Shown here: positions 14,897 through 21,386 of the stretch, one piece after another
Numbering within the stretch: the first letter of the stretch is position 1
Layout: each line of letters starts with the position of its first letter
Source of the DNA: Leidyana gryllorum EB-2025a
Lineage: Eukaryota; Protista; Apicomplexa
Reading direction: 5' to 3'
NCBI GenBank assembly: GCA_048772705.1
Contig: JBLWGC010000104.1
Location: 434,001 to 498,000 of the forward strand
Length of the DNA: 64,000 nucleotides
The notes under the pieces: generated by a model
Told to the model about the DNA's origin: nothing
The model's database searches: none
What the model saw: only the letters and a program-made list of their open reading frames with translations
Made by a program: the position numbers and the translations under genes

Positions 14897-16394
14897 ATGT
14901 CACCAACAAAGGCCATGGACAGGAGGGTATACGGGAAGCAGTTCCCATGTGATTGGGAGGCGGCTTTGTATATCTTATTGGAGGCCAACATATCACTGCG
15001 TTCATTCATCAAACTCGTATTAGAAGAGCGCTCACGAATCGAGACACCGCCCAGGGATTTACCCGAGCGTGAGTACTGGAAGTTCCTGCTATTACGTGAT
15101 AAGACTTTGGATTCATTCCGCGACTTCCTGAGTAACACTACCCAACGGCGAAATCCATCCCCGCCCCCACCGGAGACCCCACTCAGTACCTATGTCCAAC
15201 GACCCCCCAAGAAGCCTACCGCTTTCAGTCTGCGCCCGTCCCATGCTGAAGTGATTAATCATCCCCCCGAAGACGAGGAGGAGCAGCTGCCCGATATAAG
15301 CGAGAGCGTGAACGGCCTCGAGGGGCGTGCGAGTGGGAGTAGCGAGACTCCGTCCCAGCCGCTGATGGCACGACTGAAACGGAGTAACCAACCAACACCT
15401 CAATCAGACTCTTCCCCAATATCTGGTACCACCAAGTTATCCAAAGCAAATATGTCGTCGGCGACACCCGGACTGACTAAAGCAATTCTGGAATCCACCT
15501 CTACATCGAGTGGTCAAATACAGCAAGGCCGACCAACGTCCACCCTAGATGCCTCGATACCCTCCCCCTCGACAATTACCCTCAATACAGATCCCACCCC
15601 TGCAGTCAATATTTCACCCGCCTCCTCTGCAGCCGGAAGCGCTGCTGCAGGCACCGTTCGCCGGACTCCTACTAGTCCGACCGGCAGTGGCAATCCTTCC
15701 TCCTTAACCTCCAACGCTGAAGGGAAGACCATATGCGGAGGTTGCGGGTCTTACGGAGGACGCGTGATAGGAAGAAGTCCGGATAAGGGTCAAAAAAGAC
15801 CTGTATTATATTACTGTCGGAATGCCAAATGCCCGAGGCCGCAAGAAGTCAGGTGAGTATTGCGAACAGGTCAGCGATTCTTCGTCTTTGTTAACGTGAC
15901 GTTGGAGTGTGAAATGCTCTTTTGTTTCCGCCGAGCCTCTCCTTCGCTCGCTCGCTCGCGTTGAGTGAGATCAAATAGTCACACTGCACTTAATTTCAGA
16001 TACATCGGTTGGCGTAATGAGGCACCTGAACGGTACGCTAATGTTGCGCCTGGAACGGAGCTGCCACCCTTGCCGCCTCCACAACGGTTGGATGTGACGA
16101 CACGAGAAGCTTTAAAAGGGTTGCCAGGTAAGAGAGGGGGGTAACAGCTCGACACTCAGTTGGTACTTTGATGCAGTCGAGAGTATGCGGGGAGATTTAA
16201 ATCGTATGTGGCCTGACGATGTTGGCCGGACGGTGTGTATGGAATGCGGCACCGAAGCAATTGAACTCATCCACGAAACCGTCCGGATGTATCTGTGTGT
16301 AAATGACAACTGTGCGAGAGCCAAACGGGGAGCAGCAGGGAAGGTCGTAGGGTGGTATGCATTGAACATTGAAAGAATTCGGACGTCTCAATGA
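14897..16394 (+). CDS. Uncharacterised protein: EAAL helical domain, S/T/P-rich linker and two C4 zinc ribbons (paralog A)
   Basis: Exons 14897-15852, 16000-16127 and 16177-16394 join in frame via GTGAGT..TTTCAG and GTAAGA..TGCAG. They give CGGC..YYCRNAKC..RYIGW and CMEC..YLCVNDNC..KVVGW. Confidence 0.7.
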
Positions 16395-16429
16395 GGCGAT
16401 AGAAAATAGTGCGTATTTTGACAGCTTCT

Positions 16430-17622
16430 ATGACCCTCCCTCCATCACGCGCTGAGGTGGTGCTTGACCGCCTGTTGCGAGAAGCGTGGCAACAAGGAGA
16501 CAGACAATCCACCTCTTCCACATCACGACCCCACAGAGAGCCACCAGCACCGTCGTCGTCCGTACATCGATTACGTCACCCTGCAGCAAGCGACTCGTCA
16601 CCATCTACTGAAGCCTCACAACGCGAGGTAGCTTTGCACGACCGGATATCACTCCGGTCCGATCGTTTCGGTTCGCACAACGTACAGGATGTCAAGGAAG
16701 CAGCGTTATTTCTATTGTTGAGCGATAACTGCTCAGTGCTGGACTTTGTGATCTGGGCCATGGCGGAACGTAGGAAGGTCACCCACTCCCCGCAGCTAGT
16801 GGCCCGGAACCAAGTCTGGAAATACGGCCTGTTCCAGGACTCATCCTTGGCACCGGACTTGCACGCGGTTTCGACAACAGCCAGCCTTCCCAGCGAAAAT
16901 GATATGGGAGCAGAACCAGATCTCTTTCTCACCACTCCCGGCATTGAGCACGCACGATTCAGTAAGTTCACACACATCGACCCCCACGCCGAACGGTCCT
17001 GACAACCGGCCCCACGCCTACACTCCCAACAGATACGGCGGTTCCCCCTCCCGTTTGATGACCTGGAACACCAAGTATTTAAATGCTGTGTGTTTCCCGT
17101 CGTCTGCTGCCTACCCACCCCTTGACTCATCTACCTACCTACCTACCTACCTACACCCCCGTATCTCTGCCGCTGCTGCTGCTGCTGCTGCTGCACGATC
17201 TTCATATTCTCCTTGGCATAGATTCCTCTCCCATTATGGTGGGATATTGCAAGGACGAAGAGCCCCCAACGGGTACGAGGGGTAGCATGGGCTCGACAGT
17301 CTGCGGCGGCGGGAGTATGCCGCCGACTGCCATCACAGTTTCCACCTCGTGCCCGTCCAGTTCTAAATGTAAAGGTCCACCTTTGGGTGGCATGGCGACG
17401 TCTACGTATCCACGAACGACACGTGGGTCAACGCGGCGGGTGCCTGAACTGGAGAATGTCACTGTCTGCCCTGACTGCAACCGAAAGGGTCAGAGTATAT
17501 TTGACCCGAACAATAGCGGCCCCCAGGGTGTGGTCTGGCAGTACTTTTACTGCCGAAACAACGACTGCGTGCGGGGACGATCGAGTTCAAGATATATTGG
17601 GTGGGCACCCCGCCCGAAGTAG
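16430..17622 (+). CDS. Uncharacterised protein: EAAL helical domain and one C4 zinc ribbon (paralog B)
   Basis: Exons 16430-16961 and 17222-17622 join in frame (GTAAGT..CATAG), giving EAALFLLLSDNCSVLDFVIWAMAERRK and CPDC..YFYCRNNDC..RYIGW. It could instead be two smaller genes. Confidence 0.6.
17130..17195. repeat. (CTAC)n and (GCT)n microsatellites inside predicted intron
   Basis: ctacctacctacctacctacctac, followed shortly by gctgctgctgctgctgctgctgc. Confidence 0.9.
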
Positions 17623-17662
17623 ATAGATAGCATGTAGTCACAAAAATAAGCAAGTACTGGCT

Positions 17663-20189
17663 CTACTGCAGTTTCTCGTACATCGCGTCAATTTCGGCCT
17701 CATAGGCCTTCTTGGCCTCAGCTCGCCGGATCTTTTGAGTCGGTGTCAGCAAGTCATTTTCCACGGTGAAGGCCACAGGCGTCAGGTGGAATTCCCGCAC
17801 CTTCTCAAAGCCCTTCAGCCCGTTCTTCGTCCCAACAGCGTCCATCTCCGCTTTCATTGCTGAGATAAATGCTAGATTACGACAAATGCTCTCCAGCTTT
17901 GGATCAGTGTTATTCTTCTCGGCCCATTTCACGGAAGCGTCCTCATCAGGTACAATGATTGCCACCAAGCAAGTCTGATTTTAACACAATTCGATCGGCC
18001 GTCTCCGGCACACACACTTACCTTTTGAGAATATCCAAAGACAAAGATCTGCCCAACGAGGACAGCTTGCCCATAGATCGCTTCAATCTTCTCTGGAGCC
18101 ACATACTCGCCTTGAGCCAGCTTGAAGATGTTTTTCTTCCGGTCAATAATTTGTATCGCGCGGGTAGGCTCAATTAAGACGACGATGTCTCCTGTGTGGA
18201 ACCAGTTCTCGTCGTCCCAAGCCGCGGCAGTGCCTTCTGGGTTGAGGAAATAACCGCTAGCAACACCAGGCCCGCGCAAACAGAGCTCGCCCCGAGGAGG
18301 CTTGTCAGTGACCAGATAGTTGAGCTCAGGGACCGAACAAAGCTTAAACTCAACCCCTGGCCATACACCTCCCACAGGTCCCGCCAATGAGTCCTGTGGA
18401 TGCATTAAGAAGCACGGGCCAAAGGACTCTGAAAGCCCATAGCCTTGCATTAGGGGCGCCGCAAAGAAGGCGGTCATTCTTTCACACACGACAGGATCTA
18501 AGGGAGCTCCCCCACAGATCATCCCTCTTAAGCGCCCGCCCATCATAGTACGGATAGAAGCGAAAACCACCTGCAGACCAAAGAGAATCGGTAGCTTTCC
18601 CACAAATACACGGAGAGGACGAACGGCAAGAGAAGGATAGGAAGAGTGACGGAGAGACAGAAAGAGAGGAAGAGGAACCAGCGACAAGTCATCGGGATAA
18701 TTATTCACTTACCGCATCCCATATGCGGTGTGTGGTCGTGGATTCATTCCGTCTGCGATTGACCTTCGCATTGAGCCCTTGATTAAACAGCATTTGCATA
18801 GGCGCCTTCTTGTCTTGTAACGTTAACGCGATCTGCCGGGAAAGAAGTCATCCATTGGTTGACAAACAGAGAAGGACGCACTCTGTCATTTATGCGATTG
18901 AAGAGGCGTGGAACGGACAAGAAGACTGAGGGTTTGAGAACTTTAATGTCATCCAGAAGTTTGGCCATGTCACCCGAGTAGAGCCCGATGCTTCCGCCGA
19001 CAGTGATAACAATGTTACACACACAACGTTCGAAAACGTGTGCCAGCGGTAAATAAGATATTATACAGTCGCCTGCATTGACGTCGAAGATGCCGTGAGG
19101 CGCTATGGGTCCTCGCACCGCTCCACAAACCACCGAGAGCACTGTGAGATTAGATATAAGGACGCCTTTGGGTTGCCCCGTCGTTCCTGTGAGAGAGAGA
19201 AAGACAGATAGAGCTGGAGGAAGGTGGTGGGGGTAATCGCACCTGAAGTATAGCAGAGTGTATTGATAGAGTCTCTGCTGGTGGCTGGTGACGGAGGAAG
19301 TGTATCGACGCCTGCGGCAACGACTTCATGCCATAATGCGACGTTCAGACCGATGAGCTTCCCAGCTTCAACAGCTTCCTTGTACTTTTGTTGCATTAGG
19401 CGTGAGTCTTCTGTGGAGGGATCGATCAAAATGATATTCTTCACCGAGGTCAGATGGGGTTTCCGGACACGCGAGCCATCATCGTGTTTCGTCGCAATCA
19501 CCCGCAATAAAGTGGGGAAGCAGTCAAATGCAACCAAAATCGTCACCATCCCTGAAACCCAATCGATGGATGGCGCTCAATCTTCACACACTGCGCGCAA
19601 CAACATTGAACGCAATCAGTGAGCAGAAGAAGAGAGAGACTCACACACACACACAGACAGCACACTCATAAGCCATGTGCAGCTCACTGGTCTGCTCCAG
19701 GATGAACTCCATGGATTCGTCGCCAAGCGTATCATAGAGGGGGCAAAGGGTTATGTCATAGGCGTTACAGGCCTGCTCTGCTAGGAACCACTCGACGCAG
19801 TTCTTAGAGTACAGACCCAGCGTTCTCATCCGTTGGGCGCCAGGGAGCGCTTCCTCGGGATAATGGACCAACGGTACCAAGTCCTGACGGATCAAAGATG
19901 TGCCGAAGCATAGAGAAATGTTCTCTGCCTCTGAGTAGGACATCCACTCATAAGGGCCAAGCTCCCCATTGGCTTTGCGGAAACGTCTGCCCAGGAAGGG
20001 ACGATGAGGTTGTCTCGTGACGGTCCCCTTGAACAGGTCCCACGCACTGGTCATGGTACGGTCGACCATACTGGCGATTAGCTCGCTGGGATGGCTCGCA
20101 GCTCGATAGACATGGGATGAGCCTGGAGTTGGCCCACTGACGGGCACCGCGTACTTGTAGTTGTGGGAGAAGCTTTGGCCGTTCCCCAT
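17663..20189 (-). CDS. Long-chain fatty acyl-CoA synthetase (AMP-binding), multi-exon
   Basis: CYTSGTTGQPKG, SYLPLAHVFER, QGYGLSE, WFHTGDI, IDRKKNIFKLAQGEYVAPEKIE, LLTPTQKIRR; N-terminal MGNGQS myristoylation motif. Confidence 0.95.
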
Positions 20190-20405
20190 CGTGTGCTAAA
20201 AATGTGGATTTACCACCGAGTTCGTCTCAACTCGATTCCTATGCTAGGCTAACATGTGCTCTATGTCTAACGTATTCCTCTCTATCAGACGTATTTCCTC
20301 TCCAACTCTCTCTGTGTCTGCTGTGGCCATCACATCAACCCGCACCGTTGTGTCGTGGCTAAAAATTGCAAAAAGCTTTTTGAGCTGCGAGAGACAGTTG
20401 ACGGG

Positions 20406-20907
20406 ATGGCTCCGAAGAAAGTCGCCAAGGTGGCTCAACCCACAACCGGCCTGCAAGCCCCCATCCCGGCGGACAATACCAATGTCTTCGGCGTAGCCCA
20501 CGTGTATGCGTCCTTTAACGATACTTTCATCCACGTGACTGATATCTCCGGCCGTGAAACCATCACCCGTGTCACCGGTGGTATGAAGGTCAAGGCCGAT
20601 CGTGACGAGGCCTCCCCATACGCTGCTATGCTTGCTGCCCAGGATGTTGCCCAGAGATGCAAGGAACTCGGCATCACTGCCATCCACATCAAGCTCCGTG
20701 CTACCGTAAGTCTCGCCATAACCCGCACAAAAATCTTATCTCTCCCTCCAGGGTGGTGTTGGTGCTCGCTCCCCAGGCCCTGGTGCCCAGGCTGCTCTCC
20801 GTGCCCTCGCCAGAAATGGCATGAAGATTGGCAGAATCGAGGATGTCACCCCCATTCCTTCCGATTCCACCAGAAGAAAGGCCGGTCGCCGTGGTCGCCG
20901 TCTGTAG
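20406..20907 (+). CDS. RPS14: 40S ribosomal protein S14 (uS11)
   Basis: [61 protein letters not shown]; intron 20706-20751. Confidence 0.98.
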
Positions 20908-21386
20908 GCGTCTTGTTGTGCGTGTCTGCGTGCTCTGCCTCACCGAACCGACTTGGTAAAAACATTACAACTCTGCAATGTACAACAGAACTTCACTGCC
21001 TTCTGTGAGTTCAGTGCCAAATGGAACTTTTCTGCTCTATCTGACATGGTGCTGCGATGTAAAGGCACCTCCATTTTCCAATTACAGTCTTCTCAAACAT
21101 CGGCTCCGATTTACAAGGCGATAAACTGGCCTCCTGACATCACACAGAGACTGGACACTCGTAATCTTCGGGTTTGGGTCTAACATGATTCGCCCAACAG
21201 AGTGTGTGTCTCGTAAACAGCGTTCGGGATCGTGTTATAACACACTTGATGTGCTGAAGGGGATTGTAGTACGCGGCATTGGCTGGCATCGATCAATTAT
21301 TTATTGTGGATCGTCGTGATGGGAGATGCATGTGGGCCGGTGCATGGCCAAACTAAGGTCACGAGTGCAGCGATAGGGGGGTGCCG

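Follow-up and report, generated by a model that had tools for sequence, protein, structure and literature searches.

Genes A and B, which lie in tandem on the plus strand of a 64,000-nucleotide (nt) stretch of the genome of the apicomplexan Leidyana gryllorum EB-2025a (assembly GCA_048772705.1, contig JBLWGC010000104.1, positions 434,001 to 498,000 of the forward strand; hereafter the window), encode proteins that combine a common N-terminal domain (N-domain) with predicted four-cysteine zinc ribbons. They occupy positions 14897-17622 of the window, and both the two genes and the family to which they belong are almost certainly real. Within the zinc-ribbon superfamily, the ribbon is a variant of its own and falls outside every described family, because the Pfam models of the TFIIS, Ogr_Delta, and recombinase ribbons miss it, its structural neighbors are weak, and it lacks the acidic hairpin of TFIIS. 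The family has so far been present in databases as hypothetical proteins only and, as far as public sequence data show, appears to be restricted to septate eugregarines of insects.

Gene Models and Transcript Evidence

Five plus-strand open reading frames (ORFs) in the region 14897-17622 are joined into two genes by three canonical GT..AG introns. A preliminary description of this DNA had likewise merged the ORFs into two spliced genes, which is retained here, but had counted four of them instead of the five that make up the genes. Gene A (14897-16394) consists of three exons. Its first exon (14897-15852) is an ORF containing the start codon, the N-domain, a disordered linker rich in serine, threonine, and proline, and the first part of ribbon 1. 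Intron 1 (15853-15999; 147 nt, GTGAGT..TTTCAG) splits this ribbon just before the motif YIGW, and exon 2 (16000-16127) supplies the (R)YIGW end of ribbon 1 together with the inter-ribbon linker. After the predicted intron 2 (16128-16176; 49 nt, GTAAGA..TGCAG), exon 3 (16177-16394) carries ribbon 2 (Cys 16236 to Trp 16353-16355) and a TGA stop codon. Gene B (16430-17622) has two exons. The first (16430-16961) contains a conserved N-terminal motif (VLDRLL), the N-domain (approximately 16697-16849), and the start of the linker, and is separated by a predicted intron of 260 nt (16962-17221; GTAAGT..CATAG) from exon 2 (17222-17622), which encodes the remaining linker, a basic lead-in (RGSTRR..PELE), the ribbon (Cys 17467 to Trp 17602-17604), and the stop. 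Microsatellites of the types (CTAC)n and (GCT)n are located at 17122-17203, within the predicted gene B intron.

Read support was obtained from a single public run (X1), the only one to contain part of 14897-17622, whose contigs are 90-97% identical to the window; the run thus stems from a close relative. One of these contigs joins position 15848 to 15996 and omits 147 nt with GT..AG ends, exactly the length and borders of intron 1, so that the junction 15853-15999 put forward in the preliminary description is seen directly as a splice in this relative. A second contig covers 16174-16415 and finishes in a loose stretch of A residues at 16415, 21 nt past the stop of gene A, which looks like a poly(A) site. 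The skipped intron and this A-run indicate that run X1 contains RNA.

The relative also provides information on the reading frames. Among 23 listed differences between its sequence and the window, 19 affect the third base of a codon in the proposed frames; 18 of the 23 leave the amino acid unchanged (synonymous) and five are non-synonymous. The synonymous share amounts to 8/11 in exon 1 of gene A, 6/6 in exon 2 (all of them third-position changes), and 4/6 in exon 3. As these differences are mostly synonymous, exons 2 and 3 are coding, although in different frames, and judged by this pattern both frames are under purifying selection. The frame of exon 2 reaches a stop at 16142 and that of exon 3 is offset by one base; the two are reconciled by removal of the 49-nt GT..AG intron 16128-16176. 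In the orthologs P0003 and P0005 the N-domain, ribbon 1 with its YIGW end, and ribbon 2 are contained within one uninterrupted ORF. The N-domain in exon 1 of gene A shares 42% identity (E 3e-18) with the A-type protein P0003 of Protomagalhaensia wolfi, to which ribbon 1 can be aligned as well, and exon 3 aligns with the second ribbon of the same protein (E 5e-11).

Both exon frames of gene B hit a stop codon when they are read onward past the junction 16962-17221, and more than 10 B-type orthologs are single proteins that have all three parts (N-terminal motif, N-domain, and ribbon). The alignment of gene B exon 1, with the VLDRLL motif and the N-domain, to these orthologs begins at its very first residues, in support of a start codon (ATG) at 16430. 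For exon 2, the run X1 contig over 17482-17622 has zero listed differences from the window. The B-type gene of Gregarina niphandrodes is intronless at the position of the gene B intron, which is therefore probably specific to the lineage of the window. Taken on the spliced contig of the relative, the synonymous differences, and the single-ORF orthologs, the earlier proposal that splicing yields two tandem paralogs holds.

The Zinc Ribbon

Ribbon 1 of gene A extends from its first cysteine at 15734 to a tryptophan at 16010-16012 and is interrupted by intron 1; the ribbon profile retrieves it in the own genome with an E-value of 2.8e-20, and ribbon 2 with 2.7e-21. The spacings C-x2-C-x23-C-x4-C (first Cys 15734), C-x2-C-x16-C-x4-C (16236), and C-x2-C-x24-C-x4-C (17467) are present in the sequence exactly as initially described. 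Equally, the RYIGW end of ribbon 1 arises only upon splicing: excision of 15853-15999 creates the codon AG|A across the junction, followed by YIGW, and the resulting motif is identical to the ending of gene B, as had been noted before. Proteins of the window were searched exon by exon, so the aligned version of ribbon 1 from gene A lacks the YIGW end.

An alignment of 18 ribbons has four invariant cysteines and near-invariant G, G, and W residues, and yields the signature CxxC…Y-x-C-R-N-xx-C…[RK][YF]IGW. Between genera (Protomagalhaensia and Gregarina-like), B-type ribbons are 78-83% identical and the rest of the protein 31-36%; at the level of sequence, the ribbon is thus by far the most conserved segment and the constrained core of these proteins. 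An AlphaFold2 (AF2) model of the ribbon, calculated for gene B exon 2 from a five-sequence alignment, reached a mean predicted local distance difference test score (pLDDT) of 85.5 and contains strands at residues 21-29, 35-40, and 55-60. The model shows a generic zinc-ribbon fold, having four cysteine ligands for a predicted zinc ion and a small three-stranded antiparallel sheet, and its weak structural neighbors are all zinc ribbons. The ribbon segments are basic, with isoelectric points of 9.3-10.3 and net charges of +5 to +10, the exception being the A-type ribbon 2.

N-Domain and Linkers

The helical N-domain of gene A ("EAAL" domain; 14921-15112, approximately 60 amino acids) was delineated by BLASTP, alignment, and an AF2 model. 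The preliminary description had reported a domain of about 55 amino acids common to both genes, and pairwise BLASTP bears this out (E 2e-9, 33% identity over 51 ungapped residues). The domain is kept in 10 sequences from at least five organisms, in which A, L, L, F, W, and D residues do not vary, and its profile finds only genes A and B in the own genome; a weak match on contig C204 (E 0.37) was discarded because it was gone once the profile was used. The AF2 model (pLDDT 73.7) predicts a hairpin and four helices. A protein-atlas feature search with gene B exon 1 was uninformative, with bacterial clusters and a best score of 0.86.

The linkers of 10 of 12 homologs contain clusters resembling nuclear localization signals (NLS) of the KRPR, KKKRV, or RKRRK type, mostly just upstream of the ribbon, and the linker of one homolog carries a long acidic run. 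Two B-type products, P0002 and P0015 (the latter from Logan SRR5171258, contig L015), are nearly identical except that 13 residues (VCKEEAWKYLLLQ) of the N-domain are deleted in one of them. A 39-nt segment might be alternatively spliced here, or the difference may stem from the assembly or the gene call.

Family Size and Distribution

Pfam searches of the five exon products and ten homologs yielded nothing above cut-off, and a word-index protein search with the ribbon from contig C224 (see below) and gene A exon 1 had zero matches. Because these searches were empty, an exhaustive profile search was made of 1.84 billion representatives. It returned 11 clusters at E ≤ 1e-10, all with the ribbon in C-terminal position, followed by noise; relatives surfaced only in this search and in an alignment-based word search. 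The named members belong to Gregarina niphandrodes, Gregarina sp. Poly and Pseudo, Protomagalhaensia wolfi, and Blabericola migrator, all of which are septate eugregarines of insects, and the rest are Logan or ENA contigs. The named orthologs thereby place the organism of the window among the gregarines of this group. Thus, with Pfam empty and all named clusters from these gregarines, the initial view of an unassigned, lineage-specific family can be upheld. The G. niphandrodes hypothetical proteins GNI_011760 (B-type) and GNI_096640 (C-type) are true family members with the same signature, and a literature search for these two identifiers found no paper that mentions them.

In the 15.5-Mb genome of L. 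gryllorum, the ribbon profile detects five ribbons in four genes: the window contains three of these ribbons, and the minus strand of contig C224 the other two (20372-21060). The genome-wide count of both modules by hidden Markov models, which the preliminary description had recommended, accordingly gives five ribbons in four genes and an N-domain in genes A and B only. The ribbon genes on C224 form a second tandem pair (G000:C224:20372-21130, corresponding to L002 1495-2753; minus strand), apparently without introns. These genes and their own orthologs, which occur in G. niphandrodes (GNI_096640), in Gregarina sp. Poly1, and on a Logan contig, share a distinct N-terminal helix motif, LERLL.NAT.QLS.IA. 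A comparison by hhalign of the A/B N-domain with these proteins returned 0.1%, and the two are unrelated. By its sequence, the C224 pair is a second subfamily (C/D-type), and the ribbon alone is common to both subfamilies.

The order of A followed by B is retained in another species, on contig L015 (2775 nt). In P. wolfi the A and B proteins have consecutive identifiers, and the B-type protein is "p2" of a 2811-nt transcript contig. The C224 pair and the C-type locus of another species have no synteny in their flanks. At the locus L017 5001-7028 (Logan SRR31860986), in another gregarine-like genome, a C-type gene is preceded by fragments of exportin-1 (CRM1) and followed after 10 nt by a 483-amino-acid gene of unknown family. 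Since no D-type partner is found beside the C-type gene at this locus, the C/D tandem is not universal.

Relation to Known Ribbon Families

No strong full-length match to a characterized family or a transposase, which the preliminary description had named as grounds for abandoning its interpretation, was found by Pfam, the exhaustive profile search, or structure searches. The best sequence-level match in the PDB is RPB9, both ribbons of which were hit by the 18-ribbon profile in hmmsearch (E 3.7e-4 to 0.07). As in RPB9 and TFIIS, each ribbon of the family is built from two knuckles with four cysteines, of which the third follows the pattern aromatic-x-Cys, and the string Y-x-C-R-N also occurs in the N-terminal ribbon of RPB9. 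Against the TFIIS-type ribbons of the own genome, hhalign gave a probability of 75.8% over 29 columns. The Pfam TFIIS ribbon model (PF01096) detected canonical copies on other contigs of this genome but none at the A/B locus (C104:448897-451622) or on C224. An acidic hairpin loop between the knuckles is an established feature of TFIIS-type ribbons. The canonical copies in this genome carry Q.R..D[ED] at this place, whereas members of the new family have loops of the GQSIFDPNNS or GSKSxxG type and no acidic QTRSxDE-type hairpin. They further differ from TFIIS and RPB9 in their last knuckle, C-x4-C followed by approximately 12 residues to [YF]IGW, and in an entirely different domain context. One of the canonical TFIIS-type ribbons (L019; G000:C106:12780-12869, minus strand) has an in-frame stop after "…DEPMTT" and is most likely split by an intron.

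The preliminary description had compared the ribbon with the Ogr/Delta activator finger of phage P2 (PF04606), which has a similar size and a similar C-x2-C…C-x4-C spacing. In a Foldseek search of a viral library, the best row for the ribbon indeed was an Ogr/Delta-like zinc finger (probability 0.92, TM 0.51/0.56, 52 columns), with a non-significant E-value of 0.11. However, the Pfam Ogr_Delta model found nothing at E ≤ 1 in the window proteins or their homologs, and in the own genome it matched two unrelated places only, both below cut-off and neither at a ribbon locus. In contrast to Ogr/Delta, the family is eukaryotic, intron-bearing, and multi-domain, and has a conserved YIGW tail. Considering the Pfam misses, the E-value of 0.11, and RPB9 and TFIIS being at least as close, the likeness stands at the generic level of the zinc-ribbon fold, and membership in the Ogr/Delta family does not. 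The link to the ribbon of NAD-dependent DNA ligase, also drawn initially, finds no backing: a PHROGs scan of 18 ribbons produced scattered single weak matches only, and the ligase is represented by one of these (1/18 ribbons, E 0.066), which is not evidence.

Some likeness exists to the zinc ribbon of large serine recombinases (PF13408), where it serves as a DNA-binding ribbon. Weak matches to this model occur in three of ten homologs (E 0.007-0.45), with 11-17 bits (best 17.1) against a cut-off of 25.3, and there is no match in the own genome. Foldseek searches of the PDB with the ribbon gave E-values of 1.2 or higher, with serine integrases (E 1.2-3), C11, TFIIS, and A12 in the top rows, and the best Z-score in a wide VIA-align search was 2.9 (NrdR ribbon). 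Unlike serine recombinases, the family has neither a coiled-coil insertion nor a recombinase domain. Two further candidates were rejected. The GRF zinc finger (PF06839), whose signature is C…C…GRxF[YW]xC…CxFFxW, was not found by Pfam on the exons or homologs, and the GRF finger of NEIL3 had only Z 2.2; the Pfam AP2 domain characteristic of ApiAP2 proteins is absent from every exon and homolog.

Possible Function

It is plausible, though we hold this view tentatively, that the family comprises nuclear proteins with a ribbon that contacts nucleic acid, a reading based on the basic charge, the NLS-like clusters, and analogy. In such a protein the C-terminal four-cysteine ribbon would hold one zinc ion and be the working part, which most likely contacts nucleic acid, or possibly the transcription machinery, in the nucleus. 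The NLS-like basic clusters of the linker would direct the protein there, and the helical N-domain, which is specific to A and B, most likely would bind a partner protein or pair A with B. The products of both genes might then be small lineage-specific regulators of chromatin or transcription. The nearest known ribbons, those of RPB9, TFIIS-type, Ogr/Delta-like, and serine-recombinase proteins, all occur in proteins acting on DNA or RNA polymerase.

Several observations weigh against this reading. Every likeness to a known ribbon either falls short of significance or is confined to the fold, and zinc ribbons are also used to bind proteins. In the window itself, the linkers of A and B contain no clear classical NLS. 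For the N-domain, Foldseek found no PDB row below E 6, the wide VIA search reached Z-scores of at most 4.2 with helical hairpins, matches in the ESM Atlas had TM-scores below 0.5, and the N-domain profile had 0 matches among PDB sequences. A predicted complex of the A and B N-domains gave no verdict either way on binding. Finally, run X1 contains no reads across 16128-16176 or 16962-17221, the repeat stretch 17122-17203 being skipped.

Alternatively, the ribbon could be a protein-binding module that docks on RNA polymerase or another partner, in which case the proteins would be adaptors and not nucleic-acid binders. The best sequence relatives are polymerase-bound ribbons (RPB9, TFIIS), Ogr/Delta-like fingers lead the viral fold search, and the strong conservation of the B-type ribbon (78-83% versus 31-36% elsewhere) would fit a conserved macromolecular partner of any kind. 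On the other hand, the acidic hairpin of the TFIIS type is absent, the strong positive charge is more in keeping with nucleic acid, and a partner is not known; we therefore regard an adaptor role as possible but doubtful.

A more specific version of the nucleic-acid-binding reading appears improbable. It holds that these proteins are eugregarine-specific, sequence-specific DNA-binding regulators built on a new ribbon variant (CxxC…YxCRNxxC…YIGW), with tight tandem pairs that are co-transcribed or transcriptionally coupled. If true, early-branching apicomplexans would possess a non-AP2 transcription-factor family, possibly with bicistronic expression.

The preliminary description had also considered a domesticated mobile element. 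A gregarine ancestor might have captured a piece of such an element or of a virus, namely a serine-recombinase ribbon or a phage-type Ogr/Lar finger, which would agree with the sub-threshold matches to Zn_ribbon_recom in three of ten homologs, with the serine integrases that top the Foldseek PDB search, and with the Ogr/Delta-like and Lar proteins that head the viral library. However, none of these scores reaches significance, neither the genes nor their neighbors contain a recombinase or transposase domain, and only five ribbons in four genes exist genome-wide. Moreover, the flanks consist of ordinary genes that vary between species, and the introns and the purifying selection are what host genes usually show, so that this origin is very unlikely. 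Still less can be said for divergent TFIIS, RPB9, or RPC11 paralogs acting as transcript-cleavage or elongation factors, which we consider extremely unlikely: the 18-ribbon profile does match both RPB9 ribbons (E 3.7e-4 to 0.07) and hhalign supports the own TFIIS-type ribbons (75.8% over 29 columns), but the Pfam model that finds the canonical copies misses these loci, there is no catalytic acidic loop, the final C-x4-C knuckle is followed by a long tail to the tryptophan, and the N-terminal parts are unrelated. It is hardly credible that the gene models are partly wrong, such that gene A exon 3 or gene B exon 2 would form a small gene of its own or not be translated and the multi-ribbon architecture would be spurious, since, despite the two junctions without reads and the intronless B-type gene of G. 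niphandrodes, orthologs hold the complete architectures in single ORFs, the differences from the relative in exons 2 and 3 are mostly synonymous, and the splice sites are canonical.

Apicomplexans have few recognized DNA-binding families besides ApiAP2, and gregarines are their least studied major branch. Many protist genomes hold comparable orphan families. A conserved, expressed, gregarine-restricted family with a constrained basic ribbon is a concrete candidate for lineage-specific nuclear regulation, and the profiles of the N-domain (A3) and the ribbon (A4) allow it to be traced in new gregarine genomes.

Gene Spacing and Neighboring Genes

The distance from the stop codon of gene A to the ATG of gene B is 35 nt (window 16392-16432). 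In the C224 pair the corresponding gap measures approximately 47 nt (L002 1951-2003, minus strand; approximately 20825-20877 of C224), and on contig L015, from another species, 102 nt (1511-1614). The apparent poly(A) site of gene A in the relative, at 16415, is located 15 nt ahead of the gene B ATG. With this spacing, the gene B transcript would begin inside gene A, have a tiny 5′ untranslated region, or be shared with gene A. Orthologs from transcriptome assemblies sit on multi-ORF contigs. Polycistronic mRNAs have reportedly been described for Cryptosporidium parvum in a preprint (10.1101/2025.01.17.633476). The short gap between the paired genes bears on the organization of transcription units in compact genomes.

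The flanks of the A/B pair are ordinary genes that differ between species. Downstream lies a convergent minus-strand gene for an AMP-binding, acyl-CoA synthetase-like protein, and the stops of this gene and of gene B are approximately 40 nt apart (17622-17663). One run X1 contig spans the ends of both genes (17482-17743), which implies that the 3′ ends of gene B and of the AMP-binding gene overlap or abut.

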